Counted from the stretch's first letter, positions 23,469 to 49,256 are shown. The stretch is 64,000 nt of DNA from Phallusia mammillata (GCA_965637545.1 OZ281495.1:20646001-20710000); one strand, 5' to 3'. Translations and numbers: made by a program. The notes: generated by a model from the sequence alone, not told the origin.

Positions 23469-26400
23469 TTAGAAAAACTTGTAGCCTTCATCATCACAAG
23501 CCCCTCCAGTCGCAACATCAATGAAATCGCGATAATACGCGAGTTTCGTGTAAATTCCGGGTCTGATGTCAGTTTTCACGGTAGAACAGGTACGTGTGCC
23601 TGCGATGGCGATTCCGATTAAATTCCATCTTGAATCTTCATCCTGTTTTACCAGTGGACCACCAGAGTCACCCTGGACGCACAAAACAAATGGTTTGAAA
23701 GGGTATTCTTATTACAAGACAACAATTTTGAATTTCATTTAAAAAAATGAACTAATATCTTCTACCACGCGTACAAATGGCAAAAATATGTCACAAAACA
23801 ATCTGATTGTAGGATTACCAAAAAGAGTCTGTAGGATTACCAAAAACGCAACAATTAGTTACAATTGTAGTGATACAATTGTAGCAACAAAAAGCAACGC
23901 ACGCTTCAAATGAGTATTTTATGATTTGTAAAACTGAGGCTTATATATAAGATAAAGGCTTAGATTCGGACACAAAACTATAGGAAATACAGTTACAGGT
24001 AAACTTACCGCGCAGGCATCTTCCAAATAGGCGCCTTCAGTGCATATCCATGCCTCGTGGAAATGGCTTGGCCAGGAGGACTTACATTTGTTGTTACCGA
24101 TCAGAGGCAAAGTGAGTTCCTTCAGTTTTGATCTGTTTTGGTTTCCGACCTCTGCAAAGACATGACCATTAAATTTTAACTTGATATTCGAAAGATATTG
24201 TTATTTTACACAACAACAACATACGAAGTGTTTCTCCCCATCCAGTAACCCAAACTCGTTCTCCGGAGACCATCATATCTTCTTTCCCTGGAAGGCACGC
24301 AGGCTGCACGTAATTGGAGTATTGGATTGGCTCCTAAACACAAGAAGTATTCAAAGTTGAGTAATCCACCTTTTACCACTAACATATTGTGATTTGAATA
24401 ATAAATCAGGTGTGTTCAACCGAACAATGTCGTTCAACGAGGAAATGCAAATTTAAGTTGTGATATATATACCCTGAGTTTGGCAACTGCAATGTCGTGT
24501 TTGAGAGAACGGAAGTCATATTCAGGATGTGCTTCGAATGACTCAATTTCAAAGACTTGCATCGTGGGTTCTGGCGAATCTCTGTAGTATTTTCCAGCGT
24601 GAATGGCATACACCGATGGGTACTTTCTGCAACAGAAAATAGTTTGTGTTCATCGACCAATCACACACCAATGTGGCGTTAACCCTTAGTGGTCCAGCAA
24701 TTTTACCATGTTCTCCAAGCCAGGTGATTATTGTTGTTTTTTTCATTTTTTATACATCAGGGGGACATACAAAACAACATTCTGTATTTCACAAGATTTG
24801 TGAAGCTTTGGCCCTGACAAAGACTGGTTTTCTAGGTACCTATGCACACACAAGCTAACACACTGTCGTAATCTTTGTTACATCGACTGCGGTTATTGTG
24901 GCAATTGAAGTGAAAAATAAACATACGCACTGCAAACCACAAACACTCACTGAAGTTTCGAGTGCCACTATATCGCAATCTCACGCAATGTCTGGCAGCT
25001 TTAATAGCTCGGGTAACTTTTCAACGGAAAACTGTATAGGTTTGACAGCATTTTAATCAATAATATATGACTTACTCTTTCTGTCCGACCAATTTCACTC
25101 CTCGTCTTTTATAAGCCATGAAACAATGACCAGCAGTGACGATCCAACGTCTGGAAATGATTGTAGCACCGCAAATGTGGATATATCTGTCGTCATCGAA
25201 AAATGTGCGGCGGAAAGATGCCATCCAAGGCCAATACTCGATTCCGCCTGTCCATTGGCCACCTGCAAAATTCAATCGTTAATTTTAAGACACATTTTCC
25301 ATAACTTTATTATTGACTCGAACTACTCACCTACGATGCGATGCGTGATTTGTCCATCTGTGGCTCGATGACCGCAATTTTCTGCGAAATTAAGGTACTA
25401 ACTATGATTTCTGTTTTGATTTAATCAAATTTGAAAAATGCGGGTTATTTTTAGGAAAGGTTAATTTAAACATTTTTTATGTGTGAAATTGTTGTTCTTT
25501 ACCAATTAATTCACTCATTTTTGTTTGGTGTTTGCACAAACCAAAGATGAATCTTACGTGGATAACAGGTTCTGCGAGGAACTGGACGCTTCTCTGTTTC
25601 GTATATAACAGGTATGGATATACTGTCAGGAACAACTACGTTTGGTCGCGTGGTTGAAGGCGTAACTGTTGCTTTGGTGCCCGTTGGTTTGGGTTTGTTT
25701 TTAGAACCGGTCGTACCACCAGAAAGCAGATTGCTGATGAGACTTGAAGTTGGCGAGTTACCTAACAATTGAGAAAGAAGACTTGACATTCCGCCTGCAG
25801 CCGGAGCTGTGCTAGTGGGTTTAAGTCGATTCAAAAGAAGATTTGTCAGAGAGGAGCTGGATCCTCCTGAAGTGGAAGGATTTAAAAGACTGAAAATTTG
25901 CGACATCGAGTCGGATCCCCCATTAGACGGCGGAGGCTGCGTTATTATAGGTGCTGCGGTGACGACAGTGTTTGGTGGATTCAGTAGAGAAAAAATGTTT
26001 AAGGTGTTTCCAGTCTTTGTATTGGTGCTACTGGCTGTAGATGGTTTGTTGATCAAAGAAAGCGCATTAAGAAGATTAGAAGAGCCTCCCGTGGGGTTTT
26101 GACCGCTCATTCCAGAGAGAAGGGAGCTAAAAATATTGTTTGAACTCGTCGAGGATGACTGTTTGTTTTGGCCAAGAATGGAAAAAATATTTGCCAGGTT
26201 GGACGTCGATGAAGTTGTTGTGGTTTTCGGTCGATTTAACATCGACAGCATGTTCATTGAGTTTAACGAGTTGGGTTGATTCGGCTGAAGTAGATTGGAT
26301 GAAGCTGCAGGGTTAACGGTTGTTGAGATCGGTACTGGTTTCCGCAACGATGCAAGAAGACTCATGATGTCCGGGTTTGAAGCTCCACCCATTTGGTTTT

Positions 26401-28521
26401 GAAATATGTTGGCTGTTTGTCGATTATTGTTTTGTCCAAATAGTGGTTGCCCTCCACTCTGTAATCCAGTCAAGCTCTGACCAAACTGTGGTGTGGCGAA
26501 CCCAGGTACATTTGATAAACCGTTGAGCAAAGAACCCCCTCCGATATTTCCAGTGGCTGTACTAACTCTTGGCGGACTTCCTGGCTGGTATTGCGGACGA
26601 ATTCCTTCCCATATCTTTTTTGGTACAACAGATACTGCAGTACTGGTAGTGGGCGTTTCTGCATAAAAACATACAAAATAAAATAAACTTGCACGCAACC
26701 ATTCAAATGCTTCAAATACGCCGTTATGCTTCTGTTTCAAAGCAAGATAATGCTTACAAAGAACATAGCCCCTTTTGTGCCACCTAGCGGTAAATTAACA
26801 TTTTTCCGGTTTAAAATTTACCTGTTTTAGCAGTAGTAGGGATAGTTGTAGTTGTGACTATTGTTGCGATTTTGAAGCAATGTGGGACGCGTTTTCCTCC
26901 AATCGTCTTTACCACCGGATCGTAACAACAGTTAAGCTGCAATAAATAGTATTTAGCGTTATGAGTTCTCTTTTTTAAGATCACGTCAAACACTTACATT
27001 TGTACAAGCTTCGCACTCGCTTTCGCCCGCCTTTCTAGCGTGGCCTCGCGCAATGCAAGACACGCGATTGTTCAAGTTACTCTGACATTTTGATGCGCCT
27101 ACAAAGTACAAAGCGGTGTCAATGGTAATTGCTACGTTAGATTGTTATAAAAGGAAAATATCTTACCTCGAATTTTTTTGAAAAGTCTGTAAGTATTTTG
27201 ACACATCAGCTCGTTTCTGATCTCTCGTGTCAACCTAAAGAGCAATGTATTTTTTACATTTATTTCATCAAATCATATCTGATTCTAAAACATATGTTAG
27301 CTGGGTAAAAACATAATTCATTTATTGCAAGTCATACTTACAAAGGCAGTTCAGATGATGGCGAGTTGTTGGGCGAGGATTCTACAACATCAAAGAAGGA
27401 ATAAGGCTACTGGATACATTCAATAAAAAAATCCACTAATCATTTTTTTACAATTACTAAAACAAAATTTTACAATTACTAAAACACAATTGGACACCGT
27501 GTAGATCAGGGGTCGGCAACCCCTGGCACGCGTGCCATGGTTGGCACCCGAGGTAGTTTTTCATGGCACCCCAACCGATTTGCGTGTTCATATTAAAGTT
27601 ACAATTTAAGCTGTTACACTGCTTGTTTATAGTTTTTATCGTGTCATTGTTATAAAATTGACTGTTACATGTACAAAACACTCTGATTTCCCTTTATTAT
27701 TGATATCTGCTGGCACGAACCACTAATATTTACAAAAACTTTGGGACGTGAGGTCATTAGCACATGAAAATAACAAGTAAATTGGCACGTGTCGCCTAAA
27801 AGGTTGCCGACCCCTGGTGTAGATACACAAGACATTGCCTAAAATTTTGTTTAAACCAATATATTGCTTACTTTTTGCGGTGATGTCAGTCGAAGCGTTC
27901 ATCAAAGCTTTGATCCAATCAGGAATCGGCTTCTCTGTTGTGGGAGCAATCGTGGTTGTAGTCTTAGGTAATGTCGTTGTGGTTTCTACAAAGTTTTCCA
28001 TGTAACACCATGGTACACCTGCAGTGTTTGTAGGTTTATAGCAGCAAGCCCTTTCTATGCATTCCGGGCCCGTAATTCCAGGAAATCCGCAATCTTTTCT
28101 GTAATAAGAAATGTTAAAATAACAAGGATAATCCGTAATCACAGAATGTTTTGTCTGTAAAAACACGATATAAAAGCTGTGTAAACCGTTGTATTGTGAG
28201 AACATCTGCGTTTGTAACAATTAACATCATAAAAACAGAGATCAGAATCGGTTCTATTTCACTTCTTAATAAGTTCTTACATATAATTCTGTTTAGCTAG
28301 TCAGTTTTGTAACTTTTGTTTCACAAACCTCATGTCGTTTGCAATATCTGGGCATTCATATTTGGCGTTGTTGGTTTCTACCACTGCCAAAACAAAACAA
28401 AGAACGTTTAAATTTGCAACAAAAAATATAACATAATGAAATACTAACCTGTTACACTCTGTGCATGTGCAAACATCAAACAGAAGACAAATTTAGTTAC
28501 GATATTCCTTGTCAAGGACAT
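23469..28521 (-). CDS. Secreted mosaic S1A serine protease: signal peptide, trefoil, Thr-rich linker, divergent trefoil, long S/T/N/L/G low-complexity region, trypsin domain (~875 aa)
   Basis: 14 exons: 28521-28449, 28383-28329, 28098-27872, 27381-27342, 27234-27167, 27098-26998, 26936-26822, 26658-25558, 25381-25331, 25262-25076, 24626-24473, 24333-24225, 24151-24009, 23672-23469; all phases match. Trefoil 1 ECPDIANDMRKDCGFPGITGPECIERACCYKP...VPWCY. Activation site R/IVGG. Catalytic triad TAGHC, HDIAV, GDSGGP. Confidence 0.88.
27507..27816. mobile_element. 310-bp hAT-type MITE in intron 3 of the trefoil-protease gene
   Basis: TIR CAGGGGTCGGCAACC / GGTTGCCGACCCCTG. Perfect 8-bp TSD GTGTAGAT at 27499-27506 and 27817-27824. 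Confidence 0.92.
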
Positions 28522-31771: not shown

Positions 31772-34700
31772 TTAGGCCATCTGCTGTTGTTCGAAGAATT
31801 TGTATGTGGGATTCTCATAGCCGTTTTGCTGCATTTGAAGCAATTGGCGTTCCTCATTTGTCAGATGGTCGTCCACCTGCACAGTTAATTAGTTTCAAAG
31901 ATTAAGAAATAAACTGCTACTTGTGTTTGAACACTTTTATGAACCTGGTATACGGTTCGATATAATACATGTTAATACCAATGCAAAAAATGTTAAATAT
32001 TGTTCTGTTAAATTTGGTTTTATGCTAGCTTGGCATGCAATAAACCGATATTTTGCCTTGTGTAAAAACATATAAAAACAAAAGCAATGCCAATACGTAA
32101 GTCTTCGCTTATACGATGGTTGTTAACGTAACATATTGTACACAAGGCAGCTTCAAATGTGAGTCTAAATATTGCTGCAAACCTACATACTGGTTTGCAG
32201 CAGCAGCCAACCACATTAAGGTCATCAAATTATGTCAAATCTCTTTGTCGTATTTACCAAATGTCTCAACAACACCGAATCAAAGCTCGCAAAATGACAC
32301 AGAGTGACACATCCGTGGGCTTACTTCGTCAATCATATCTTACGCTTCTACAGACTATAAAATCCTTCGCACATACCAAAGTATATTTTGTACATTTGTC
32401 AGAATGGTTTGTACATTTATGCCGATTCACTCGTTTACGTGCGGAATTTTAGATCAAATCACAACCATATTAGGAAGACACGCAACTAACTGCAGTGTGG
32501 AATATTGAATGCAAATGCTTAAGGTTACCAGTCGGTCGTTTGGGTGGTTGAAAGGTCCAGTGTGCGCCTTGGTCAACGATTATAACAGGGCGACCCGTGG
32601 GGGAAGCTGAATCAATAGGTTATAACATTTAAGTACGGTTGAGCGATAGACCATTTGCGCCAAGTTCGTTTCTTTCGATTTCCCACTGTGCATTGGTAGG
32701 TGGCTGTTAATTAAGAAACGCCAATTCGCACTTACTCGCGATTTTCTTATGCGAGATTCTTGGCATTTGGCGCCACACCTATACGTCAATACATAATAGT
32801 TTTACAAGCTTCTGTTACAATTTACGGCCTTTATATAACAATAGAGTAATATACAGCTTATGTAACCAAGAAGTTACAAAAACACGCTTGGCAGGCGTTT
32901 AGACACGACAAAGCACTGTGAACACACAAAAACTTGTTCCGAACTTATAAGAAATCACAATGATTCAAAGCGTAACTTTCGGAGGAATCGAGTCTCATCC
33001 GAAGAAACTTAAACATTAAATTTAAATTCAAATCAGCGATAAGCGTCTCCTAACGTCAATTACCCTCGCGTTGCGCAAGAAACATACGTCAAGCAGACAA
33101 ACACACAATCGGCAGTGCAAACACATTTCATGGACGCGGTTTCGTGATCAGTCAAGCATATCACGACGGGAAATGTGTGACCTCATCTGATGTTGTTCAC
33201 TGTAGCTGGGTGAACCTTTCAATAAGTGTTGCCGAGTACTGACGCGGTGTTACGCAATTCCAGCTACTTCTCGTTCTCAACAAGTCAACAGGGTTCGACA
33301 AACAACCCAAGACCGCCAGAAATCACACAGAGGTTGAAATAGCGAGAAATTTCGGATTTACCTTGATTTTGGTAAACTGATGACTCATCTTACGTCGCAT
33401 GACAGAGTGATGTACGACAGCCACAATACATATGAGCAGTAGAAGACCAGCACCAGCAATTCCAGCCCATTTCAACCAGGCGGTTTCACTTGTTCTGTCA
33501 GGATCGTCAAAGTAATTCTGCGCGAGAGAAAATGATACAAAAATCGTTAAACAAGAATTGGGAACTAGGTGCAATTGAACAGTACGTGAATTGTCATGGT
33601 CTTTGGAGAGACGAACCCACCCAATCATACTGTTACATGAATAATTTATTAACAAAGTTTGAACGGACAGGTGCTGAATCTTGAGAGCGCTGATAAAACG
33701 AGTTTGCAATCTTTAGTGTCGTAAAATCATTTTTTATTGATAACTTACATCACACATTAAACGTTTAAAAATATTACATTTATACACAATTCAAAAAGTT
33801 TCCAAGCACGCAACTGAAATATAGCGTGCGATTCTTTATTTAAAATCGTGACAGGTACAAGTTTAAGTTCATGTCTTTAGCTTGGAATGTTTGCATCACG
33901 AATTCGGTATATGACTAATGTGATATGACCGATATCTAAAGTGCATTTAACAAAACTTACCATGATCGCTGCGCTGTTTACGTAAACTGGTTCGCCATTC
34001 TCACTTTCTTCGTCATCATCATCAGATTCCACATCGAAATACTGTGAATATAAAAATCAAATTTAGACACCAAACTACGAACCAAATTATTTTCTAACCA
34101 AAATCGCCTTCAGCAGAACCCTAAGGGTTTCGGAAGTTAAGGGAAAGAGTGCAGAAGCAATTCTCCTGGAAGCACAGTCTAGTCGTAAACGTGTAATCGG
34201 CTATGGTGATTCGATGCCGTTCAGTATGTTACTATTTGGGGAAATTCTCACTTACGAAATTGGAAACCACAGGCGACAAGCGGAAAGTAATATTAGACAA
34301 ATCTGAGTTGGCGCGAAACCGAACAGCACATCCATGTGTTAAGTCAAAACACAAATGCTCGGGGCAAATTTAACATATTTTTGACAAATATTATTTGACC
34401 ATTCAATGAAACTACCACCTTGTATTGGCCGAACAATGTTTTTTCGTTGTAGTTAAGTAGACCAGCCGAATGGTTATGGACAAAAAAGTCACAGACTTGT
34501 TGTGTTTACAATAAACCTGCTATATCACAAAACTACATTTTCAATGCATAGTACGCGACCATTGCTGTTGTTGAGTGCTGCGCGGTTAATTGAATTTCGA
34601 GTTTGACAGTTTCCTCTCGTGTAAAGCTGAGGTCGATCAATATTCGTTGCGCAAACGAAGCAAGCTAACAACGGCGGAATTTAAAGAAACTGGAACAGAA

Positions 34701-37700
34701 ATAGACCAGCAAAACCACCCACGTTCTTGTTTACCTTTTTGGTTAAGGACTTGGGGTAAAACGGAATCGATTTTTAAACGGTTTTCACAAGCGTCGGCAA
34801 TAAATTAAGTCAGGGGCATAAATTTGGCTGGGCTGAATTGTCAAAGAACGAATCAAATATACTTCATTGTTTTGTGATAAAGAGCCATATACATACTTTA
34901 GGTTTTTAATAAACAAACCAAAAGACAAAACTATGTTTTTTTTTGTAGAAACACAAATTCCCCAATGATACATAAGACTAGTCTAATCGAGTGAATCTGC
35001 GACTGAACCTACATTTTCAAAGTTGAGTTGTCTTGATTGCATTATTGTTAAAAAGTTAGCATTTTTCCACAATACTTTTTTTCACATTCTGCCCATGGTC
35101 AATGACTGGTTTATGAACAGAAAATAACCTTCAAATTTCAACCATCTACCTCATCTGTGTCTGGTTCGAAATCTGGGTCATCATTTACAATGGCAACCAT
35201 TCCATTGTCCACATCAGTATCAGTGTCTTCATTTTCATCAGGGACAACATCAGCTTCTGCATCTTCTTCATCCTCATCAGTACCTTCCAATTCATCCTCA
35301 TCATAAACATCAAACTCATCTTCATCTCCATCATCATCATATTCTTCACCATCTTCATCATCTAAACCAGTAAAGGAAAGAACATATAAATTATAAATGA
35401 CTTACCTAGTAAAGCCAGTATAATAGATAGTCTATAATCAGTGGCGGAATTCAAATTTTTTGTCAGCCGGTTCTATCACAAAAGTCATATTTTTCAGCCG
35501 GTTTTGTTACAAAAAGTCCATTGACAGTAACCATTAATGCTAACCAGTTCGCTGATCTCATAAAATTTTGTGAGACAGTTCTATAGAACCGGTGCGAACC
35601 AGCTGAATCCCACCACTGTCTATAATATATCTTTGTCTTTTCAACATGAAATATATACAGCAGTAGATGAGAACAAAAACATTTCAAAAGGCTTGTCAAC
35701 ATAATGTCAGAATGATTGAAGGAAAGAAACCATTTGTTACTTGTTTTGGATTTTATTGCAAAAAATAAATGTAAAAATATTTGTAACATATAGAAATTCC
35801 AATTTACCTTCTTCGTCACTGTATTCATATTCTTCTGAATCATAATATTCATCTTCATTGTTTTCCTCTGCAAAATGGGTACACATAATGGTAAATCTTT
35901 TCCAATTGATTTTAACTAAATCTACCTAAATAGTAAATACATACTTTATATGCTTACTAATTGCAGACGTTGTACCAAAAATCATTAATTAGTTTTATAT
36001 TCACATGCACAATTGAAATAAATAAACTTACCAGCAGGTAATCCGCCCTCATCTATTATCGGTTGGTTTTCTACAGAATCAATTTCAATGTCCATTTCAA
36101 AGGAAAACGAAGGTAGCACGCTGTCCATGAATGAACCTTTAAAACCAAAAACAATTTAATCTGTAAACTTTTGAAATTACTTAAGTAGCTATGGATTCAT
36201 CAAACTTTGTTTTAGTGTGCACATGTTAATGTTTGTGTGCTAAATCGTTTTATTGCACTGATTTATGTGTTACGTAATAGCCAGATTCTTACTTAGGTCA
36301 TCTTCCAAATCACTGTAAATTTCGGGATATTGCTCCTGTAATGTTTCTATGGTGTTGGAGATTCGGTCCTAAAAAAATTGAATGTCATGATACACAACCA
36401 ATCATCAGTTGTCTCCATTCATAATTTAGCACCTACATGTGGGATAGAACTGTAGAGTCCTTCATTAAAGTTTAAAAAGTTGTCTTTCTCTTGTATGCTA
36501 ATTTGTGGCAGTTAAAAATGTCACACTTAAATTCGGTGCAGGACACATTGTCTGCCAAATACTAAAACCTAGTACCGAAAAGTACCGAATTTCTAAAACA
36601 TATGTTTTATAGCAACTGTTTATAATCATTAGTTGTAAATCTTTGTACTTTTACAATACAAGTGCAATATAATGTCTTTAGAAAACTTTGAGTGCACCTC
36701 AATTGAGTTCAATCTTGCTTGTAGCTTCTCACTATCTTCAGGCTGAATTTTAATGTGATCTCTGGTGTGCTCGTGGTCTTTTTTCTCTGCTCTAATATAT
36801 TTTTGTAGTGTTGAGAATATTCCTGATATCTGAAACAAACAGAAGAATTGTGTAAGCATAGAAATACTAACTAAACCAACATAAGTTGTAAAAAATAGAT
36901 TTTACTCATGTTTCTGAGCTAGACCGGTACTTGGCACTGAGTGTCTATTCATTTAATGTTCATTTATACCATGCTTAACACAAGTGCAAACTAGAAGGGT
37001 GGCTTAGCACATTTTACTATAGCATATACACTACAACCTATTCTGCAAACTGTAATATATTCTCTATATTTATTTATATTGGGTCCCATATTAGCCAACA
37101 TTTTTATAATCTTGATTTGTTTCTGCAGGCAGAAACTCATGGGTCCCCAAAACCGCAAAGTTGTAAACAGACAACCATAAGAAACGGTGCTATAAAGTCA
37201 AACACAGTGATTGGTAGTGTTACTTAAAAAAACAAGTTATGTAAAGTACAAACTGTCCAAATCTCATGCAATTGAGACATTGTTATAAGTTTGTGTGCCT
37301 AAATAGCATAAAACACTGACATCTCAAAATGGCATATTATACAAACTGTCAAAATGTATTGTTGATTAATTCACCCATTTTGGGGGGTTGGTAGGGTAAA
37401 TATTAGGGCTGCAGGGTGGAACACAATATTTGACAGCTACAAATGCCAAATTCAAAAAACTATCAAAAATTCATCCAAATCGGACGTTTTATAAACAATA
37501 GGTGGCTTAAGCAGTAAATATTGGGGCTACAGGGTGAAACACAATAATCGACGCCCTAAAATGGAACAATGAACAAACTGTCCAAATTTCATCCAAATCG
37601 GACATTGTTTAAAAAATCACCCATTTTTGGGGTCTAGTGGGGTGAATATTGGGGCTACAGGGTAAAACACAACAAACGATGCCCTAAAATGGCACAATGA

Positions 37701-40700
37701 ACAAACTGTCCAAATTTCATCCAATTCGGACATTGTTTAAAAAATCACCCATTTTAGGGGGCTAGTGGGGTAAATATTGGGGCTACAGGGTAAAACACAA
37801 CAAACGATGCCCTAAAATGGCACAATGAACAAACTGTCCAAATTTCATCCAATTCGGACATTGTTTAAAAAATCACCCATTTTTGGGGTCTAGTGGGGTA
37901 AATATTGGGGCTACAGGGTAAACACAACAAACGATGCCCTAAAATGGCACAATGAACAAACTGTCCAAATTTCATCCAAATCGGACATTGTTTAAAAAAT
38001 CACCCATTTTAGGGGGCTAGTGGGGTAAATATTGGGGCTACAGGGTAAAACACAACAAACGATGCCCTAAAATGGCACAATGAACAAACTGTCCAAATTT
38101 CATCCGATTCGGACATTGTTTAAAAAATCACCCATTTTAGGGGGCTAGTGGGGTAAACACTGGGGCTATCGAGTCAAACAAAACAAATGGCACACCTACA
38201 TAACCATATCTACCATCTGTGAAAATTTCATCCAAATCCATCAAACATTTCTTGGCAAAGTGGGGTGGACAAACTTGAGGGAAGAAGAAAAAAAACAGAA
38301 AAAAACAGAAAAAAAAAACAAACAAATCGAGTAAAATCAAAATGTGTCCCCTTCAGGGAAGGGGACCCATAAAAATAAAGTCAAGTTTTAAATCAAACAA
38401 AATCACTTTTTTTCCACAAATGGTGAGCTTGGTTTAATAAATGTGACAAAAATATTGTTCGGTACAAATTTAACAGAAAGTTTTTAAGCCAAAGAATAAC
38501 AAAACTGTAACCAACGTATTGTTGTTGTATTTTTGTGACATCAGACATTTAAGCATGTTTGGCAATAAAATATGAACATGAGTCTGTGAAACAGACCGTT
38601 TTTCCATTCCTACTACAAGGCACTCAGAAAAATCAATAATTACAATCAATTCAGATCGTAATATACCTTGGATTACAATCATAGCATAATAAATCCAATG
38701 AATAAAATAAATATTTTGTACAATAATGAAGTCTTACATCAGGAATATCAGCATTCAGTTGTTGCATGTAGTTATGCAGAGCAGTTTGCCTGTGTTTCAC
38801 CAAAACAGCATCCATTCTGGCTTCATGGAGTGATGACAACTGTTCCTGTTTCTGGTTGTGCTCTAGAACTAAAGCTGCCTTTGTTCGTTGCAAGTCCTAC
38901 AACCAAGATGCATTTGAAACAAACATTTTAAAACATAAAACACACATAAATCATGTGACACCCTGAAACATGTGGAAGTTTGCTTTGTATGTTTATTTAT
39001 TTTTGCAAAAATCTTCTGCAGTGTCCACAATAGTGAGTATCAGGAAAACAACTTAAAAGGTGTATTTGAAACAAATGTGCTCACAGCTTCCAACTTGTTT
39101 CGTTTTTCTGTGATTCCCTTGGGATCAGTAATTGCACTTTCCAGGAGTTGGCTGTTAGCTGCGTCCCAGTCAGTCATCATCTAAGTGGTAAGACAATTAT
39201 GTCAGACTTGAGAGGGGTGAAGAAAAGGTACAGAATAATACGGCAAAAATACACAAAAACCCATCACAGCTCATAATAAATTTAACTTTTCCAAATTTAC
39301 GTTTGTTAATTTGGCTTGATGGTCTTTTAATTCTTGTTGCACGCTTTGAATGTACAACTCATGTTCGTGATCAACGTCCAATGGTGAGCCAAAGTAGTCA
39401 GAAGTAGCAGTTACTTCTTCTGTGGTTGTTGTTGTTGTTGGTGGTGATTGAGTAGCTATATGATAAAGAAAATATTTAATGTAGTGTTCTCACACATCAT
39501 TCTTTACACACAGTTGTATTCATACTTGTAGCAGATGGCTGACATGCACTTTGACAATTTGCTTCCGTCACAAAGTTATTTCTGTTTGCCCCACAACCTC
39601 CATACACAAATTGTGAACATTGGCCAGTTGCAACATCATAATACCACCTTCTAAAGAAGGCTTTGCACATGCCCACAAGCTTTGGCTCAAAACACCTTGA
39701 ATCAATGTCAACTGGTTCTACAAAATGTGAGAAAAAAGCCAATATAAGATATGTTTAGAGCTACAAAGAAATGTATGTGTGTAACACATATATATTTGGA
39801 CAGTAAAAGAAAACCAAATGTGTCTTCAATGTATCAACTATGTTTATAACTTGGGCAGTACAAACAAACAAAATTATTGTAATGCACCAATATTCATTCC
39901 ACCAATTGTAAAATTAAACCTTAAATAATCCAACATTTAGGCCAAGAGCAAACAGCTGAAAAAATAAACAGTTTTGACTTCTTCACCAAATGTTGGTTTC
40001 ATACCTTTCTCCTCTTGCTCACCAATCAACACAGGGCCAAGACCTGGAAAGACTGGTAATTTTGCAACTGGATCAACAACTGTAAAGTTTGCACAGTTGG
40101 TTACTTAGTACGAGAAAATAATGTATAATACCATGAGTGGCATTTAAATTACCAATTGTTGATGGGGCACAGGCATTTGCACACTCCACTGCACTCTTGA
40201 AGTTGTTAGCATTACCACCACAACCACCATAAATGAAATGCTGACATTGGCCAGATTCGGTATCAAAGTAGAAAGCATCAAATGATGCCCTGCATGGGCC
40301 AATATCTTTCGGCATGGAGCATGCTGGATTGTTGTCTACACAAAAAATAAATCATGCACAGAAGTTAAAAGGTAGTTAAAACCAAGCCTACTTTAACATG
40401 GTTTTAAACAAACCTGTTTCTACCGGCAAAGGGTCAACTTCGACTATGTCAGGTTTTGACTTGTGTGAAGGACAACAGACAAATTCAACACCATGCCAAG
40501 CATCAGGAATATCCACACATGGTTTTAGGGGACTAAAGTCTGGTTGAAGACTCATCGACTGCAAGTAACACATGATTGATTTAGCATATTTTACAAAACA
40601 AAACACACAAGGAAAAATACAACACACTGTTTCGAACTGTTGTTCTTGCGATAATCACTGAAAAAGCATAAAGTTTAAAACACATTTGAGTCGTTTCTGA

Positions 40701-42387
40701 ATTGCCTGTGTTTCCAACAAAAGGTGTTTTTATAAGAACTATAATAGACAGGAAGGGGGAATCATTTGAACAATATTTTGACACAACATGTCTGAGAGAG
40801 TGCACTTGAGCAGGAAAAGGGAAATGATGGCCTCTCAAAATCATACACTTTATGTCCAGCTCTCTGGTTGCTATGTAAGGGCGAGGCAATACCAATTTGA
40901 CATAATCCATGTTAACATGTCAAAGGCCTGGAAACGTGACACCAAGGCAGTATGCTGTAACAACAGTGGCTAATATACAATGTAAGAATGGATTAAGTGA
41001 CTCACAAGTTCTTGGCATTTTCCATTTGCCACAGTCGCCCAATAATCGTAAGATTCACATTGAGATACATTATGGACATGCAAAAACTGGCAATCCTCAT
41101 TAACTTGCAGAGCAGGGCTTTGGAATGAGCCAACTAAAAATATAAAACAAATTTAATTTTTAAGCTTTGCACTTTTGCAGTAAGGTAAAAAAAAATACAA
41201 AAATATCTTTGATAGAAGTCATTATGATATTGACTTGCCATTCAAAGTGTAAACTATTGCATACATGAGATTTGTATCCCACATAAAATATGTATTAAAA
41301 GTACAAAAAACTTACTTATGCATTTGACAGGAACCACTGCATGGGGATGTCCTTTGCAAGTTGGGCCTTTCTTCCCTATTGAACACCAGTTCATAATCCC
41401 AACCTTTTCAGTTTCTTTCAACACATTAGTGATGTCCAAGGTTGGGTAGATCTATGATATACACATGTTCGTGTTACCATACTCAACACAGGGTTATATT
41501 TCTTAATGGGATTTTAGTTTACATGTTTAAAATGATAAAAGCATACCTTTTTACAGTACGCCAGCATATCAGAGGCTGAAGACATACAATCTGCATTTCC
41601 ACTTGGGTCAGTCAACCACTGACCTGTCACAACATCTCTATGTTGTGTGTTTTTCCCACATTGCATAGCAATGGCTGCATCATGCTAAACAATGCAGTAA
41701 CGATTACTAATTATACACTAACAACTTTAGCTTATGTTTGTAAGCACATCAAATTGTACAATTTAAGTGTCAGCTGTATCATGAGTGATACTTTTTACAC
41801 CAGGTGGTATTGCTTATAAATTACTAATAAATATTTAATATATAAGCAGACTACAATCTGGTAGAAAAGAAAACTTGGGCCCGGGGAGGTTTATTTATGC
41901 ATTTTCATGTGTATTGTTATACTTAAATGTGTTTCTTGCATAATTACTGTAGCTAAGATTTTTGATCAATAAATGACAACATCTATTTGAGTTGTAAAAC
42001 TACTAACAATGCAGTTAGAACCACAAACACATGTGAAGTGTTAGCACTTAGACTTTAACCCACTTTACATCTTAACATATAAGTGCTAAGTTCCATGAAA
42101 TAGGATTTGCTTTAATATTTCCTGATTAGCAAACACCAGTGACTCTCTGGTAAATAAAATTAAAGCCTATGGCACAAACACTACTTTGGACTTTGACCAA
42201 TGAAGTCAGGTGTTTTGGGCAAGTCAAGCAATTTGGTTTTGGTGCAATAAATCTAGTTTTAACAGTAATGTTTGAACAGTAAAAAAGGGCAGCTATATGC
42301 ACAATGTAACACAAAAAATACCTGCACAGGAGAAGCAGTGCAAACATGTAGCAGCACAATACACAAAAACAGAAAACCACTCATCAT
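31772..42387 (-). CDS. APP: Amyloid precursor protein family member (APP/APLP-like) with two Kunitz domains (~795 aa)
   Basis: 19 exons: 42387-42322, 41684-41547, 41451-41316, 41133-41006, 40558-40414, 40335-40153, 40067-40005, 39717-39526, 39455-39301, 39180-39085, 38896-38738, 36829-36698, 36368-36293, 36136-36032, 35867-35808, 35361-35150, 34041-33961, 33517-33362, 31876-31772; phases match. E1 (IAMQCG...DPSG...YCKKIYP; HGVEFVCCP), two Kunitz domains, E2 (KYIRAEKKD), TM helix, and tail [23 protein letters not shown]. Confidence 0.95.
35439..35618. mobile_element. 180-bp hAT-type MITE in APP intron 15
   Basis: TIR CAGTGGCGGAATTC / GAATCCCACCACTG (12/14). Perfect 8-bp TSD TCTATAAT at 35431-35438 and 35619-35626. 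Confidence 0.88.
37133..38372. mobile_element. Helentron-associated (HINE/DINE-1-like) non-autonomous element in APP intron 11; boundaries approximate
   Basis: 10-bp subterminal inverted repeat ATGGGTCCCC (37139-37148) / GGGGACCCAT (38361-38370). 3' hairpin GTCCCCTTC-agg-GAAGGGGAC (38346-38366). Central tandem array and an A-rich simple repeat before the hairpin. No TSD seen. Confidence 0.6.
37370..38160 (+). repeat. Tandem array of 128-bp units
   Basis: Units start at 37611, 37739, 37867, 37994 and 38122 (partial) and are nearly identical (AAAAAATCACCCATTTT...GGACATTGTTT). About two degenerate units lie upstream at 37370-37610. Confidence 0.95.
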
Positions 42388-42944
42388 TCTTCTCTCTTTT
42401 TTAAGTGTTTTTATCACCCGTAACACAAAAATAAAAACTAACAACAATATAGTAAATTTTCTGAAACCCAAAAATGTCAATTTTAGTTGGGCCTACAAAC
42501 TAATTCCTTGTTGAAATAAGTAAATAACACTTGCGGTTTACAAGTATAACATCTAAACCAATTTATTGTAATTTTGACACAATGAGTTCACCCATGTCAA
42601 CGACATTACATTATGTTGAAATCAAAATGTCACCAAAAAATAAATTGCAGTTAGAGTTCGAACCTTTTTCTCACTTCCATTGAACCCCAATTAGTAATGT
42701 GAAATTCTATCTACTTATACAAAACCAGCAATCTGAAAATATTTTGCATACAGAGTCACGATGATAAACCAAACAGAGCAGTTACTTAAATTAAAGATTT
42801 ATAATCAAACTAATTAAGTACTGAATCAAATTAATCACAATATATTCGACAACAGTACAGAATAACGAAAGGCCAGGTGTTGAAAAATGTTTGGTGCACA
42901 TTTGTACTGAAAAGGACCTTCGTCAAACTCCTGTTTTGGCGTTG

Positions 42945-42987: not shown

Positions 42988-45413
42988 GTATATAGGCATT
43001 GTTGTCAAACTAATCGTTGTTAAAAAACAGTTTGTATGCTTGCACTTGTAACTTGCTTAGGTTTAGCATACCAAACATTTATAAATTGATTCAAACCAAT
43101 GTTTACGCTGTTTGAAACTACAACAACTCTTTAGGAGAAAAAAACCTTACTTTTCAGGTTAAAAAAAACCCTTAAGAAACATAAAGCACTTGTTTTAAGC
43201 TAAAGAACAAAACTTTTTTAAACATATTATTTTGGCAGTAAATCAGGCAACTATATGATAAATTTCATACTGCACACAATTTGAAATAATAACAGGTTAG
43301 TATACTGTATTTTTTATACTTTATTCTGACTTAACATATTCTACTAAACCATAGTTTAGTGCTTAACTGCTTATAAGCAGTGTAGGCAATAAATCTGCTT
43401 GGAAGATTTAAGCTGTATAGTGTATATATATGTATGGAAACCAACCATACATACTGGCATGACATCATCAGCTTGCACCGAGGATTTAAGCAACTTATCT
43501 CAACTGTTTAAAGCTAACTCGGAAATCGGCACTCCTCGCAAGTCCCAAATACATGAAGCATGAAGCCATGAACCAAACTAACAATGACCCCACACACGAA
43601 AATACCCAGGCCTTAGTTTCCGAGAGCGAAAGCCAAAAAAGTTCCAGGTCAGATAGGAAACTGAACTGACTGAATACTGAAATACAGTGCATAAGAAAAT
43701 TCGCGGACCTTCGTTTGCCTTTCACATCAGGTGATAAACCAGACACAAAAGCCAGCCTGTCTGCAAGGGAAGATCCAATAATCAACACTTGTGTGGGGAT
43801 TTTCTCTTTACCGAGAGAATAAAATCTAAGTGACGTAATAATAAGCTTCACTTTGCATGTCGAAAAACCGAAAAACATACGTGTTTGTTATTCAATTTTA
43901 AAAAAATATCACATTTTCATATAAGTCACATTTTAATTGCTTACTTGTTTTGTTCATAAGCAAAGATAAATTTTGTGCCTCATTTACGGCCAGGCAAACA
44001 CAACAACAACAAGAGTTTTAAACAAACCTTTGATAGATAATATAGAATTCCTCTTGGACGCTAAATAAAAGCTACATATGTTAACTTGTGTTTAAATTCG
44101 GTTAAAACACAATAAATTTATTTTCCACGACAGCTTTGGCAGATCAAGCTATACATACTAACGTTTCTAAAATGTAGCACAACCGGCCAAAGTGGAAATA
44201 TGAGATAATAAACAGGACATCCATTAAATTTACGTGATATGGCTATGGCACCGATTAGGCAAAAACGAAGCAGACTTTAAAGTGGAATGCCACGCTCTCT
44301 AGTGGTAATTCGAGTAATTAGCTTTTCGTGAACACGTTGCTGGATGATCAGTGAAGTCTCATTTTTATGTTTATTTTATGCTAAATAATACATTTTGTCA
44401 TTATTTGCATCGATTTAGCTCCTTGTATTTGGTCGTAGAACAGTTCACCATGTCCTTACAGTAGGGACAATTAGGATTGGAAACTGTTCCCCGTCTGCGT
44501 TGTCTGTGGGATGTGCGACAGTGCTGTGATTGTGATAGAATAATGTTTGCTAGAAGCCGAATAAAAACCTGCCAAACCGGCGGTTGGGTATAAAATCAGA
44601 AAACCTTTCAGAAAAGCTCCCAACCTTGTCCTGTGCACCCTTTGATTTGAATAAAATCTAAAAAAAAAAATCTAAACTTCCATTAAGTGGAAGCAAAATG
44701 TGTGTGGTGTCTGATTTAGTATGCATTTCAGTGGAGTGTCTTCTAATGACAACTGTGGTCGGGGAATATAGTTATGTAAAATTACGTAAAAGGCGGTTTG
44801 TTACATAACAGACAGGGGCAAATTTTCATTGTGCGTGAACAATCTTAATTTTATTTTTACTTGTGATGGAATCAAGGGGCATTATTGCACCATATCGGCT
44901 CTTGGTAGTTCTTGTTAGAAAAAACATAAGCTGTTTGTAGTTCTGTCGAAATCACTTCGCGGGTTTCAGTTTTAGACAAACTGCGTTAAAGGCTTGTAAG
45001 CAGTGCCGCCCCCGTATACATCATTCTAAAAATTATTCGGCCCAGTGTGAAAAAAGTTTAGTGACCCCTGTTCTCGAGGGTATCGTTACTATCGTCACTG
45101 CATATCTCTTGAAAACATTTGAGTTCAAAAATTAAATATTGCTTTGCATACTTGTTTATTGAAAAGAACAAAAACAAAACACACAACAATATTAATAAAT
45201 ACAAATATCGACATGGCTTTAGCGCATAAATTTCCGTAACAAATATAAAAATGCTAATTAAACGCTTAAGTGCTACCTACATACCATATACAGTGTAAGC
45301 ATAACCTAAGAAACACTTTTGGAAGGTTTGAAGAAACAAAATTTGTAATAACTTAATTATAGTTTGTTGTTCGCTAATGCTTCATGTGCTTAACCCATTA
45401 GCGAAAGTTACCA

Positions 45414-48400
45414 CTAAATAGTGTTGTACTTCATTACAAAACCTTGCTTAGCCACTGTGTTGTCCGAACGGAAAACAACTTTAATAACCAGTTTTTCTCC
45501 ACCTTGACGTGCAACAGTTAGAGCCGCAGGAAGATTGCTGCCGCAGTAAGTACCTGGATAAAACAATGTTGTTTAAAACGTCCTCGAGCAAAGATAAAAT
45601 TTCTTTTTCTTTTAAATTTGCACACACATACATGTAAGATAATTAAAAACAGATAATTTGAAAACTGTCACAAAGTTTAATGCGATGAAACTTGTGTTAT
45701 GGGCAGTTTTGTGTAAAACTAGTACAAATGAAAAACTAACTTACCGATGAGGTTTATAAAACCTTCCCCAGAGTAAACTTGTGTGTAATCATATTTGCAG
45801 TCGTCTTTCGTGGGAGATGGCTCCAAGTCAAATGCCTCAAACTGGATCACTGCTTTTGACGTTGGGCCCGTAACGTAAGACAGCTAAAGAAATATAAATT
45901 GTAAAAGACTGTTAGGCGAAAAAAGTGTCATCTGTCAACCCGGAAATAAACAGAAGCAGTTTAGCACAGATCTTCTTATTTGGCTAAACGGCTGTTATGC
46001 GTCATTCAGCATAGTGTTAGCCAATTCCCTGGCAGCACTGACGAAAATGTCATGTTCGGACTGAAATTTAACATTCGTTTAACTATTTTCGCCTTTTTAA
46101 GTGACTGCTGACGTTTTGCTTGTGGTTTTCAACACTTCAATCAATTCAGAATCGTTCCTACGTTTTTACTTACATCAATTTCCCACAAACAGTTGCTGTC
46201 GTTAGGATATTCGCCTTCGTCAAAGCCTGGACTGGTGATGATACCTTGGTCTTTGTCTTCAATTTTTACTCCACTGTACTTGCAGGCATCGTTGTTTACT
46301 ACAGCAGGTAGCGCTATACAACAAGAAAGGTTGTTGGTTGATTTTTATGTAAAACGCAATCCAGTTTAATTCCAGAATTCACTACATGCAGCTTCAACAA
46401 ACCCAACATCGATTGTTTTGTTTTGTGACGTAACAAATCAATTGTCTATGTATGCTTAAAAAAGTTTCGTTTTAAAAAGCAACAGCACAGTAAAATAAGG
46501 ACATGAACCGCTAAAATTAAACTTTCCCTGTAAGAAAATCTAAAAAAAGATTAAATCATGTACGAGCCTTGTCTTGACTTACAGAGCGTCTGATTAATCC
46601 ACGCCATATAAGGTCCAATTCGCGTATAAATTCCAGCATGTCCTTTTTGTCCACAACCTCTGCCCCACGAAACAATCCCTGACAAAACCCTTTCAGCATC
46701 AGCTAGTTTGCCGAAACGTGGACACGTAAGCGGCCCACCACTATCACCCTGGAACAAAAATAGCTTACGTTTGAAATTTGTGCACAGGTTAATATGTTTC
46801 CAACAGGCAAACTTTCGCTACAAGATAACTTAGTTTCAAAAAAGAAACGGTCCCCCAAATTTCTCCAGCGGTTTCCCAAAATTTGGACTTGCAACTACAA
46901 CTACAGTTTTTGGTATTTAAATAAATCACTTGCGGTCTCTTAAAACTACTTAGCGGTCACCCAAACCAAACCTTAAAAAAAACCTGCCCATATGACTGTG
47001 AAATTTAGCGACATGATGAAGATATGAGAAGTTGTTCTCGTATTAATGTACGTACATATTTGTTGAAAAGGTGTTTAAGAGAGAAGGTAAACATACCTGG
47101 CATGAGTCTTTACTGCCATCCAGATATCCGGCGCAAAGCATTTTGGATGTAAATTCTGCAGAAATTTCCGTGGCTGAGTGATGTAAGCCTTCGCACTGAT
47201 TTTGGAGTAAAATCGGTACCTTTAGCGTCTGCAAAATATCTGGTTTCGTCCTGGGATCGCTAAATCCCCAACCTGAAAAACGTTGCAAGAACTATAACAA
47301 TAAAGGCAACAAGCAAAACTTCAGACGAAGCCTTGCTTATTTTAGCCTATCGTGAACTCCAATCACCTCAGGTAGCTATGGGCAAAAATGTCATGTCAGA
47401 TAAAGTTTAGATTTTCGATGTAAAAGAATTACCCCGATTTAACCAGGAAGTCGTGAAACTAGTCTTTGGATATTTTAGGCAAACGATTACTTGGAAAACG
47501 ACCCACAGAATTACTACCAGTGGAAGTTTCCTTGTTTGCATTTATTTTCAACATAGTACACTTTTTCAACTGTTTCAGATGTTTTATGTTCATGCATAGG
47601 ATATGCATGTAAACGATTTTAAACATTTTTGGTTTCTCCACTTCAACAAATATCTGAAAAAGCGTATTTTTTTAAAAAAAACGCAATAACAAATTATGGT
47701 TTATAATGCGACCGTTGTGCTTAAATCGTTAGAAATGGGACACAAACAACGTACCAGAGATGGTGCACATAGTGTAGGGATACGGATCTTCATCGAAATG
47801 GGGCAAACACGCCGGTACCACGTAGTTATTTAACTCGAAAGGTCGATCAGCCTCTAAAGACATGGAAAATAAACATATTAAATGACTGATGTCGAACTCG
47901 ATCACTTTTACAGCTCACTGCTTACCGAGCATCGCGATATCGTTTTTTAATGTCTGCAAACCAAATTCAGGATGTATGACCACCCGAGCAGCGTAGCGTG
48001 CTTGTTCCTTTGTATCAGACTTGCTGTTCGAGTGATCTCCCGCCACGAGACGATAAACTTTGCGTGCGTTGGGATTTATGACGCTGTAAAACAACAAGGG
48101 GTCGCTTTGGTTTTGAGGTCGGGGGCTAAGTGGAAGTTGTTTTTTAGGGGCAGGAACTTGGCCGAATGGCCTGGCGCGCCTGACCCATATACAGACATAA
48201 AAAACCTGATCGGGATTCGTCCCCGGGAGGTTCCTGGGTTCGAACCCCGTGAAGAAAAGAAAAAAAAAAAAAAAAAGTTGTTTTTTAGTACGAAGATACA
48301 TTACGGCGCTTTAAAAGGCTACAATCTTAAGTTTTTTCGGTATTTGTTTGTTTCTGTTGAGGACTTGTTAAACACGATTCACAAAAGTAGTAGACATTGT

Positions 48401-49256
48401 TTAGTTTAAAAAACAATTAATTTGAAGGACAGACTATAAGTATAAGAGTTAACGTTTACTGTTGACAGGAAGTGTTCGTGAAATGAATCAATATCCTGTA
48501 TTGCGTAATGTAGAACAAAATTAAGCAGCGAGAAAAAACTATTTAGCATTTAACAAAACGTTTGTCAACATAGTATCACACGAAAGGAAATATTTTAAGC
48601 CTTTTTGCATACTTAGCATTCTTTGCATGTAAAATGTACGTTACAAAGTTACAAAGTTTCTAAGTTTGTTTTGCGATTACAATTAAATTGGAAATGTTTT
48701 TACAAAACTCAAAGTATAAAAAAAATTATACTAGGCTATTATAGGTAATGTCAACTTGATTGTCGTGATTCTTGAGAACTGTGGTATCATAAATTTCAAT
48801 GCAGTTTTACCCCTAGTATAGTTTATTTAACATGTCGTAAAAATGACCTTCGTACCTTGCAATAACGCAGTGAGCAGCGGTCAGGGCCCATCTTCTGTTA
48901 ACGATAGTTGCTCCACACTTTCTTATTCTAAATAAAAATGCACATACAATGCCTTGCGACATGCATAAGAAAATTGTAACACATTTAACGTACATGGCAC
49001 TTACTCGTTTTCATACAAATTTACTTGCCACGGCACCTCTCCGTACTGCGCTGTTTCTCCGTTAAAAATTCGAGCAAACCTGGCGTTTTCAAGTGCTGGC
49101 CTGGTTCCGCAAAGTACCTGAGCACCTAGTAATGCAGGTAAACTGTTAAAAGCTAGAGTTCTTCTTTACAACAGATAAAAATAACTTACCAACAGTGATA
49201 AAAAGTAAAAATAACACTGAAGCACCACAAACGTAAGTTAAAAATGAACTTCTCAT
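45414..49256 (-). CDS. Secreted trypsin-like serine protease with one C-terminal CUB domain (acrosin/ovochymase-like architecture, ~425 aa)
   Basis: 10 exons: 49256-49190, 49125-49005, 48927-48856, 48083-47926, 47853-47755, 47272-47097, 46748-46583, 46313-46174, 45883-45745, 45553-45414; phases match. Signal peptide, LCG...R/IFNG activation site, TAAHC, NDIAML, DSCQGDSGGP, VSWG. CUB motifs GIITSPGF...YPNDSNCLWEI, FEAFDLE...CKYDY, GTYCG...FRSD...GF...Y. Confidence 0.92.
46861..46986. mobile_element. Partial copy of the 122-269 MITE family in a protease intron
   Basis: Shares TTCTCCAGCGGTTTCCCAAAATTT...CTTGCGGTCTCTTAAAACTACTTAGCGGTCACCCAAACCAAACCTTAAAAAAAACC with 144-269. Left TIR and TSD not found. 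Confidence 0.75.
48148..48274 (+). mobile_element. tRNA-derived SINE with poly(A) tail, copy 2, in protease intron 3
   Basis: GGGCAGGAACTTGGCCGAATGG...GGGTTCGAACCCCGTG followed by an A-tail. 14-bp TSD AAGTTGTTTTTTAG at 48134-48147 and 48275-48288. Confidence 0.88.

Follow-up and report, generated by a model that had tools for sequence, protein, structure and literature searches.

The closest described counterparts of the protein studied here are vertebrate APP751/770 and APLP2. They share with it the order APP_N, copper-binding domain (CuBD), Kunitz domain, E2, transmembrane segment and YENPTY tail, and in both cases the Kunitz module lies between the CuBD and E2, is encoded by its own frame-preserving exon and carries a basic P1 residue. 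The vertebrate KPI exons are alternatively spliced, and the APP-KPI of vertebrates (protease nexin 2) acts on trypsin-like serine proteases as a substrate-like inhibitor. Two Kunitz modules within one ectodomain or chain are likewise found in the membrane-anchored HAI-1 and HAI-2 (SPINT1/2) and in the soluble bikunin and boophilin; these proteins are unrelated to the APP family outside the Kunitz modules, and the likeness concerns a possible working mode rather than family. A published survey of APP evolution restricted KPI to vertebrate APP and APLP2 (PMC3660159). In Ciona, APP was concluded to be absent (PMC3865767); PMC11728170 refers to a bioinformatic study in which an App orthologue was reported from Ciona. 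Our literature search, which covered few of the subscription journals, returned no paper on a tunicate APP with Kunitz domains.

The locus described here lies in a 64-kb window, the whole stretch of DNA analysed, from the ascidian Phallusia mammillata, and encodes two Kunitz domains where vertebrate APP and APLP2 have one. It is the single APP-family gene of this ascidian, and both Kunitz exons are included together in its predominant mRNA. We consider it probable that the two domains form a bivalent inhibitor and that the module was already part of APP in the tunicate-vertebrate lineage.

An APP-family gene with 19 exons

The sequence of the gene is already public as that of an uncharacterised protein. 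The UniProt entry 'Uncharacterized protein LOC100180559' of P. mammillata (829 aa, here P0146) is its product: each of the 12 exons proven by RNA translates into an exact piece of P0146, the pieces being consecutive (residues 6-565), and seven further pieces of the protein map to window positions 36368-31775, the downstream exons. Profile and sequence searches were run exon by exon, and P0146 was used for whole-protein steps. A run search gave 14 probable RNA runs containing ~35% of the words sampled from a 3.1-kb stretch, roughly the exonic share. Four runs from four studies were mapped on 36600-42550 in the form of assembled contigs, which say nothing about tissue or stage. In every run a single contig of 3.0-3.3 kb and even depth joins exons 1-12, and all skipped parts read CT..AC on the plus strand, corresponding to GT..AG introns. 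The contig of one run (X5) extends past 42462, and the reverse complement of its extra letters ends in ATTCTATTTGAATA, joined at AG. These 16 nt are the Ciona spliced leader (PMC1488885), and the contigs are therefore mRNA and the animal an ascidian; the run type had been presumed to be RNA, and both the spliced leader and the joining of the contigs without introns are strong evidence for it.

The gene is encoded on the minus strand by 19 exons that together specify APP_N, CuBD and E2, followed by the transmembrane segment and the GYENPTY tail. Downstream of the trans-splice acceptor (ag, 42462-42461), exon 1 (42322-42461) opens with 5' UTR, contains the start codon (42387-42385) and a signal peptide of 22 codons beginning MMSGFLFLC, and ends at a phase-0 donor at 42322, the joint 41684/42322 being present in four runs. 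The true start is placed at 42387, the first AUG to follow the leader in an mRNA with its trans-splice site at 42461. The first 30 residues of P0146 are 5' UTR read-through, the deposited start being 30 residues too early, and the product counted from the true start codon is ~799 aa long.

Exons 2 (41547-41684) and 3 (41316-41451), both with RNA joints, encode the two halves of APP_N (Pfam 2.2e-12 and 5.2e-08) and span positions 2-91 of the profile (PF02177). The first half of the CuBD (PF12924) is encoded by exon 4 (41006-41133; RNA joints; Pfam APP_Cu_bd 2.2e-08, 35.0 bits) and its end by exon 5 (40414-40558; joint 40335/40414), which adds a short spacer and ends in phase 1. The APP_Cu_bd match of exon 5, a half-domain piece, is slightly below the 26.4-bit cut-off (1.4e-05, 26.0 bits), and the VEFVCCP ending of the domain (GVEFVCCP in exon 5) was read directly. 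Downstream of the Kunitz exons, exon 9 (39301-39455; P0146 residues 386-436) encodes a threonine-rich stretch and the start of E2, which continues through exons 10 (39084-39180; residues 437-468), 11 (38738-38895) and 12 (36697-36829; joint 36829/38738); exons 9-11 likewise have RNA joints. The E2 profile (PF12925) matches exon 11 (4.4e-07) and, weakly, exon 12, and is also precomputed for the full deposited protein. Exon 13 (36291-36367, its low end placed to ~2 nt; residues 566-591) is touched by the loose end of the contig, which runs on beyond 36697 to 36338-36367. The remaining exons were placed by P0146. Exact matches assign residues 592-716 to exons 14-16 (35150-36134: ~36033-36134, 35809-35868 and 35150-35362), the acidic juxtamembrane region after E2, and residues 717-796 to exons 17-18 (33359-34041: ~33961-34041 and 33359-33517), an acidic stretch and the transmembrane segment, seen as a hydrophobic run at residues 760-778. 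The last exon (31772-31873; residues 797-829) encodes the cytoplasmic tail with GYENPTY, followed by the stop codon, and matches APP_amyloid (PF10515, 3.6e-17), in keeping with a single-pass protein with an APP-type tail. The matches of the neighbouring exons to APP_N, APP_Cu_bd, APP_E2 and APP_amyloid bear out the earlier note, which had named the gene as APP from the sequence.

Two features of the membrane-proximal half differ from vertebrate APP. The Beta-APP profile (Abeta, PF03494) is present in fish and shark APPs (precomputed Pfam) but has no match on the transmembrane exon or among the precomputed domains of P0146, and the gene is therefore an APP-family orthologue rather than an Abeta-bearing APP. 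The Asp/Glu-rich region (33961-36134, minus strand) sits after E2 and adjoins the membrane, whereas the acidic region of vertebrate APP lies between the CuBD and KPI. A six-frame APP_N search of the whole 240-Mb assembly matched exons 2 and 3 and nothing else, and with one APP_N locus this is therefore the single APP-family gene of P. mammillata. A word-index search with the E1 region of the Phallusia protein returned only the protein itself.

The neighbourhood of the gene contains trypsin-domain genes on both sides, on the same minus strand (Pfam): one with CUB and trypsin domains upstream (45400-49010) and one with trefoil and trypsin domains downstream (23470-28300). Downstream of the latter are exons of a protein kinase gene (5400-9400, minus strand; Pkinase 9.7e-15 on 7132-7470).

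Two Kunitz domains and their predicted activity

The first Kunitz domain (K1) is encoded by exon 6 (40153-40335, minus strand; 183 nt) with the reactive loop GPCRA and Arg at P1 (codon 40291-40289), the second (K2) by exon 8 (39526-39717, minus strand; 192 nt) with the loop GMCKA and Lys at P1 (codon 39664-39662). Both exons are phase 1 on either side, and in that frame they translate without a stop codon into one full Kunitz domain each. The cysteine spacing is C-8-C-15-C-7-C-12-C-3-C in both, and Pfam Kunitz_BPTI (PF00014) is matched over positions 1-53 of 53 (K1, 6.6e-21, 74.7 bits; K2, 3.3e-19, 69.3 bits). Ala at P1' and the motifs GGC and NNF are likewise common to the two domains. K1 and K2 are the only Kunitz cysteine patterns when the 64-kb window is read in all six frames. 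They are joined by exon 7 (40005-40079, minus strand; 75 nt, phase 1 on both sides; joints 40079/40153 and 39717/40005), which carries the motif GLGPVLI. The earlier note had described two complete six-cysteine domains on separate phase-1 exons, and the exon boundaries it gave (40335-40153 and 39717-39526) coincide exactly with the RNA splice joints in four runs; its 21-residue linker exon has to be corrected to 24 whole codons plus two split ones.

The cores of K1 and K2 are identical at 25/51 amino acids (49%), at 58% of nucleotides and at 22/51 third codon positions. The two are therefore an old pair and not an assembly duplicate, as had been claimed from their divergence. The sole polymorphism seen in K1 is at 40235, a third codon position (TTC to TTT).

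An AlphaFold (AF2) model of P0146 residues 232-388, built on a 10-row alignment, contains two helix-hairpin-helix Kunitz units with block pLDDT of 82-92, connected by a linker of low pLDDT (48-54). Foldseek searches with the K1-linker-K2 model placed multi-Kunitz inhibitors on top (boophilin, SmCI, bikunin and HAI-1; top matches 2ody, 1bik and 5h7v), and the single domains of the model superpose on APPI, ShPI-1 and textilinin at 0.7-1.0 A rmsd. By sequence, the match to human APP KPI in the PDB (1aap) reached 62.5 bits for K2 and 55.7 bits for K1. Six cysteines, a full-length profile match, the fold and a P1 residue of the serine-protease type thus place both domains in the Kunitz/BPTI family (MEROPS I2).

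Most likely, K1 and K2 are each standard-mechanism inhibitors that engage trypsin-like serine proteases in the manner of a substrate, a prediction made because both keep the full canonical scaffold and a basic P1. Some Kunitz domains with an intact scaffold are non-inhibitors or regulators, and the second Kunitz domain of HAI-1 does not inhibit the main target of that protein. By analogy with this domain, or with collagen VI C5, one of the two Phallusia domains could be the working inhibitor and the other a binding or regulatory module. The 49% identity of K1 and K2, the differing loop residues beside P1 (GPCRASF in K1, GMCKAFF in K2) and the fact that Clavelina manages without K2 would fit such a division of labour. 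We nevertheless regard it as unlikely, given that the basic P1, Ala at P1', GGC, NNF and all six cysteines are retained in both domains, and that 13/13 Kunitz domains of the seven-member clade described below keep six cysteines and Arg or Lys at P1, a pattern that fits purifying selection on inhibitor function at both positions. The P1 residue is not basic in all APPs: the KPI loops of bamboo shark APP (P0154) and sawfish APP (P0281) read GPCEA and GPCHA, with Glu and His in the place of the usual Arg, a change that in these cartilaginous fishes would modify inhibition of the trypsin type or remove it altogether.

The product is a type I membrane protein in which the signal peptide is followed by the growth-factor-like and copper-binding domains, Kunitz 1, a flexible linker of ~38 residues, Kunitz 2, the threonine-rich stretch, E2, the long acidic region, the transmembrane helix and the YENPTY tail. 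With both domains active, it would be a bivalent inhibitor anchored in the membrane, which may become a soluble one after ectodomain shedding.

Joint inclusion of the Kunitz exons

In all four runs the joints 40414|40335, 40153|40079, 40005|39717 and 39526|39455 connect exon 5, K1, the linker, K2 and exon 9 within one contig, and K1, linker and K2 are thus together in the predominant mRNA. Mutually exclusive use of the two Kunitz exons, or their absence from APP mRNA, either of which would have spoken against a double-Kunitz APP, is ruled out by these contigs.

With lengths of 183, 75 and 192 nt and phase 1 on both sides, K1, linker and K2 can each be skipped with the frame kept. The earlier note had taken this symmetry to allow 0-, 1- or 2-KPI isoforms through independent skipping, and the three exons might be regulated cassettes like vertebrate exons 7 and 8, the more so as the vertebrate KPI exons are alternatively spliced and fish isoforms are seen with and without PF00014. 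The Phallusia RNA lends this no support. A single contig of even depth runs from exon 5 through K1, linker and K2 to exon 9 in four runs from four studies, no exon-skipping joint occurs among the best 15 of 17 joints in these runs, with the proviso that contigs drop rare variants, and the two-Kunitz form is the one Phallusia protein present in the databases searched. Regulated cassettes are therefore quite improbable, and in the RNA examined the Kunitz exons look constitutive, which is a further difference from vertebrate APP; minor isoforms lacking K1 or K2 may exist.

That the arrangement is an artefact, either an assembly duplication or a gene model or transcript chimera fusing a neighbouring Kunitz gene to APP, is next to inconceivable, as the exon cores are just 58% identical in DNA, the same joined mRNA was obtained in four independent studies and in a deposited transcript-derived protein independent of the DNA, and five other transcripts have the same architecture.

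The 1.9-kb intron 11 contains, between 37000 and 38400, numerous short contigs whose depth is high and uneven; they come in several variants, are present in all four runs and are accompanied by a repeat at 38280-38331. These look like transcribed repeats or transposable elements.

Kunitz modules across the APP family

A search with the conserved last exon against 1.84 billion cluster representatives gave 125 matches. Among the full-length matches, a single Kunitz domain occurs in cod APP, in killifish APLP2 and in the 'amyloid-beta precursor protein-like' protein of Clavelina lepadiformis (XP_076800742.1, P0002), the closest named relative. No Kunitz domain is present in the full-length proteins of caecilian (APLP1), lamprey, sea urchin, sea cucumber, acorn worm, barnacle, Artemia and mantis shrimp, and the 39-kb acorn-worm locus holds no Kunitz-coding stretch. 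Two Kunitz domains were found in three marine transcripts from this search and in two more from a region-restricted search. These five are proteins from Tara Oceans-type metatranscriptomes or from an SRA assembly (run SRR9618227), and their putative tunicate origin is based on the tree and the shared linker motif; no spliced leader was recognisable at the 5' ends of three of the double-Kunitz transcripts. Together with Phallusia and Clavelina they form a clade with 100/100 support when the Kunitz columns are masked, apart from vertebrates, ambulacrarians and amphioxus, although three of the five are on long branches and their placement is therefore less sure. A search with the Clavelina protein was dominated by multi-Kunitz proteins such as papilins, and a Ciona orthologue was not recovered by any sequence search made.

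Judged from these sequences, two Kunitz domains appear to be the norm in the tunicate-type APP clade. The survey of KPI number that the earlier note had proposed thus returned mostly two in this clade and none in the amphioxus, echinoderm and crustacean proteins or the hemichordate locus examined. What it had held to be new shrinks to the same extent: the double-Kunitz protein stands, yet it was already deposited, if uncharacterised, and its two modules are usual among its relatives.

The linker motif, GLGPV followed by two aliphatic residues, is present in 6/7 APPs of the tunicate clade and in 0/158 of the other APP-like proteins compared; the vertebrate sequences examined lack it, which sets them apart from Phallusia. 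The order around it varies. Phallusia has K1, motif and K2, Clavelina has K1 and motif, and in four marine transcripts the motif precedes both Kunitz domains, the remaining transcript being without it. An orthologue of the K1 exon, of the same length (183 nt) and 65-67% identical, is present in the Clavelina locus together with an orthologue of the linker exon that carries the motif. No second Kunitz-coding stretch was found in the 17-kb locus, in which ~247 bp separate the linker exon from the next exon.

By pairwise likeness, K1 is closest to the Clavelina domain (66%) and K2 to the first domain after the motif in one marine-transcript lineage (58%), and K1 and K2 are each 50% identical to shark APP KPI. 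In a Kunitz-only tree of 34 domains and 53 columns, K1 groups with the Clavelina domain (94/75) and K2 with the second Kunitz domain of one marine transcript (98/79). Such a tree had been suggested as a way of finding the copy that belongs with vertebrate KPI; partners were found for both domains, and neither joined the vertebrate KPI clade with support.

These comparisons suggest that APP of the tunicate-vertebrate lineage already contained the Kunitz module, and that in tunicates the symmetric phase-1 exons may repeatedly have undergone duplication, relocation or loss, as exemplified by the absence of K2 from Clavelina and the position of both Kunitz domains after the linker motif in other lineages. 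More tentatively, and with the balance of our judgement against it, the tunicate-vertebrate ancestor could have had a multi-Kunitz APP, of which vertebrates kept one module as an optional part and tunicates two as a constitutive part, shuffled around GLGPV, the protein acting as a tethered inhibitor of two extracellular serine proteases. If this were true, protease control would be an ancestral chordate function of APP.

The Kunitz-bearing tunicate APPs conflict with the published statement that KPI is confined to vertebrates (PMC3660159). The sister group of the vertebrates has a clear APP orthologue with Kunitz modules, usually two, which would place the recruitment of KPI by APP at the tunicate-vertebrate stem or before it and indicates that the module is labile in evolution, both in its copy number and in its position. 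The accepted workings of Kunitz domains and of APP are left unchanged. The role of the protease-inhibitor part of APP could be tested in this chordate, which is compact and genetically tractable and has just one APP gene.

A different module is found at the corresponding position in amphioxus. The APLP2-like isoform X5 (P0059) has no Kunitz domain and carries an EGF domain (EGF_3, cEGF; residues 221-258) between the copper-binding domain and E2, so that in this annotated isoform an EGF domain occupies the slot held by Kunitz domains in tunicates and vertebrates.
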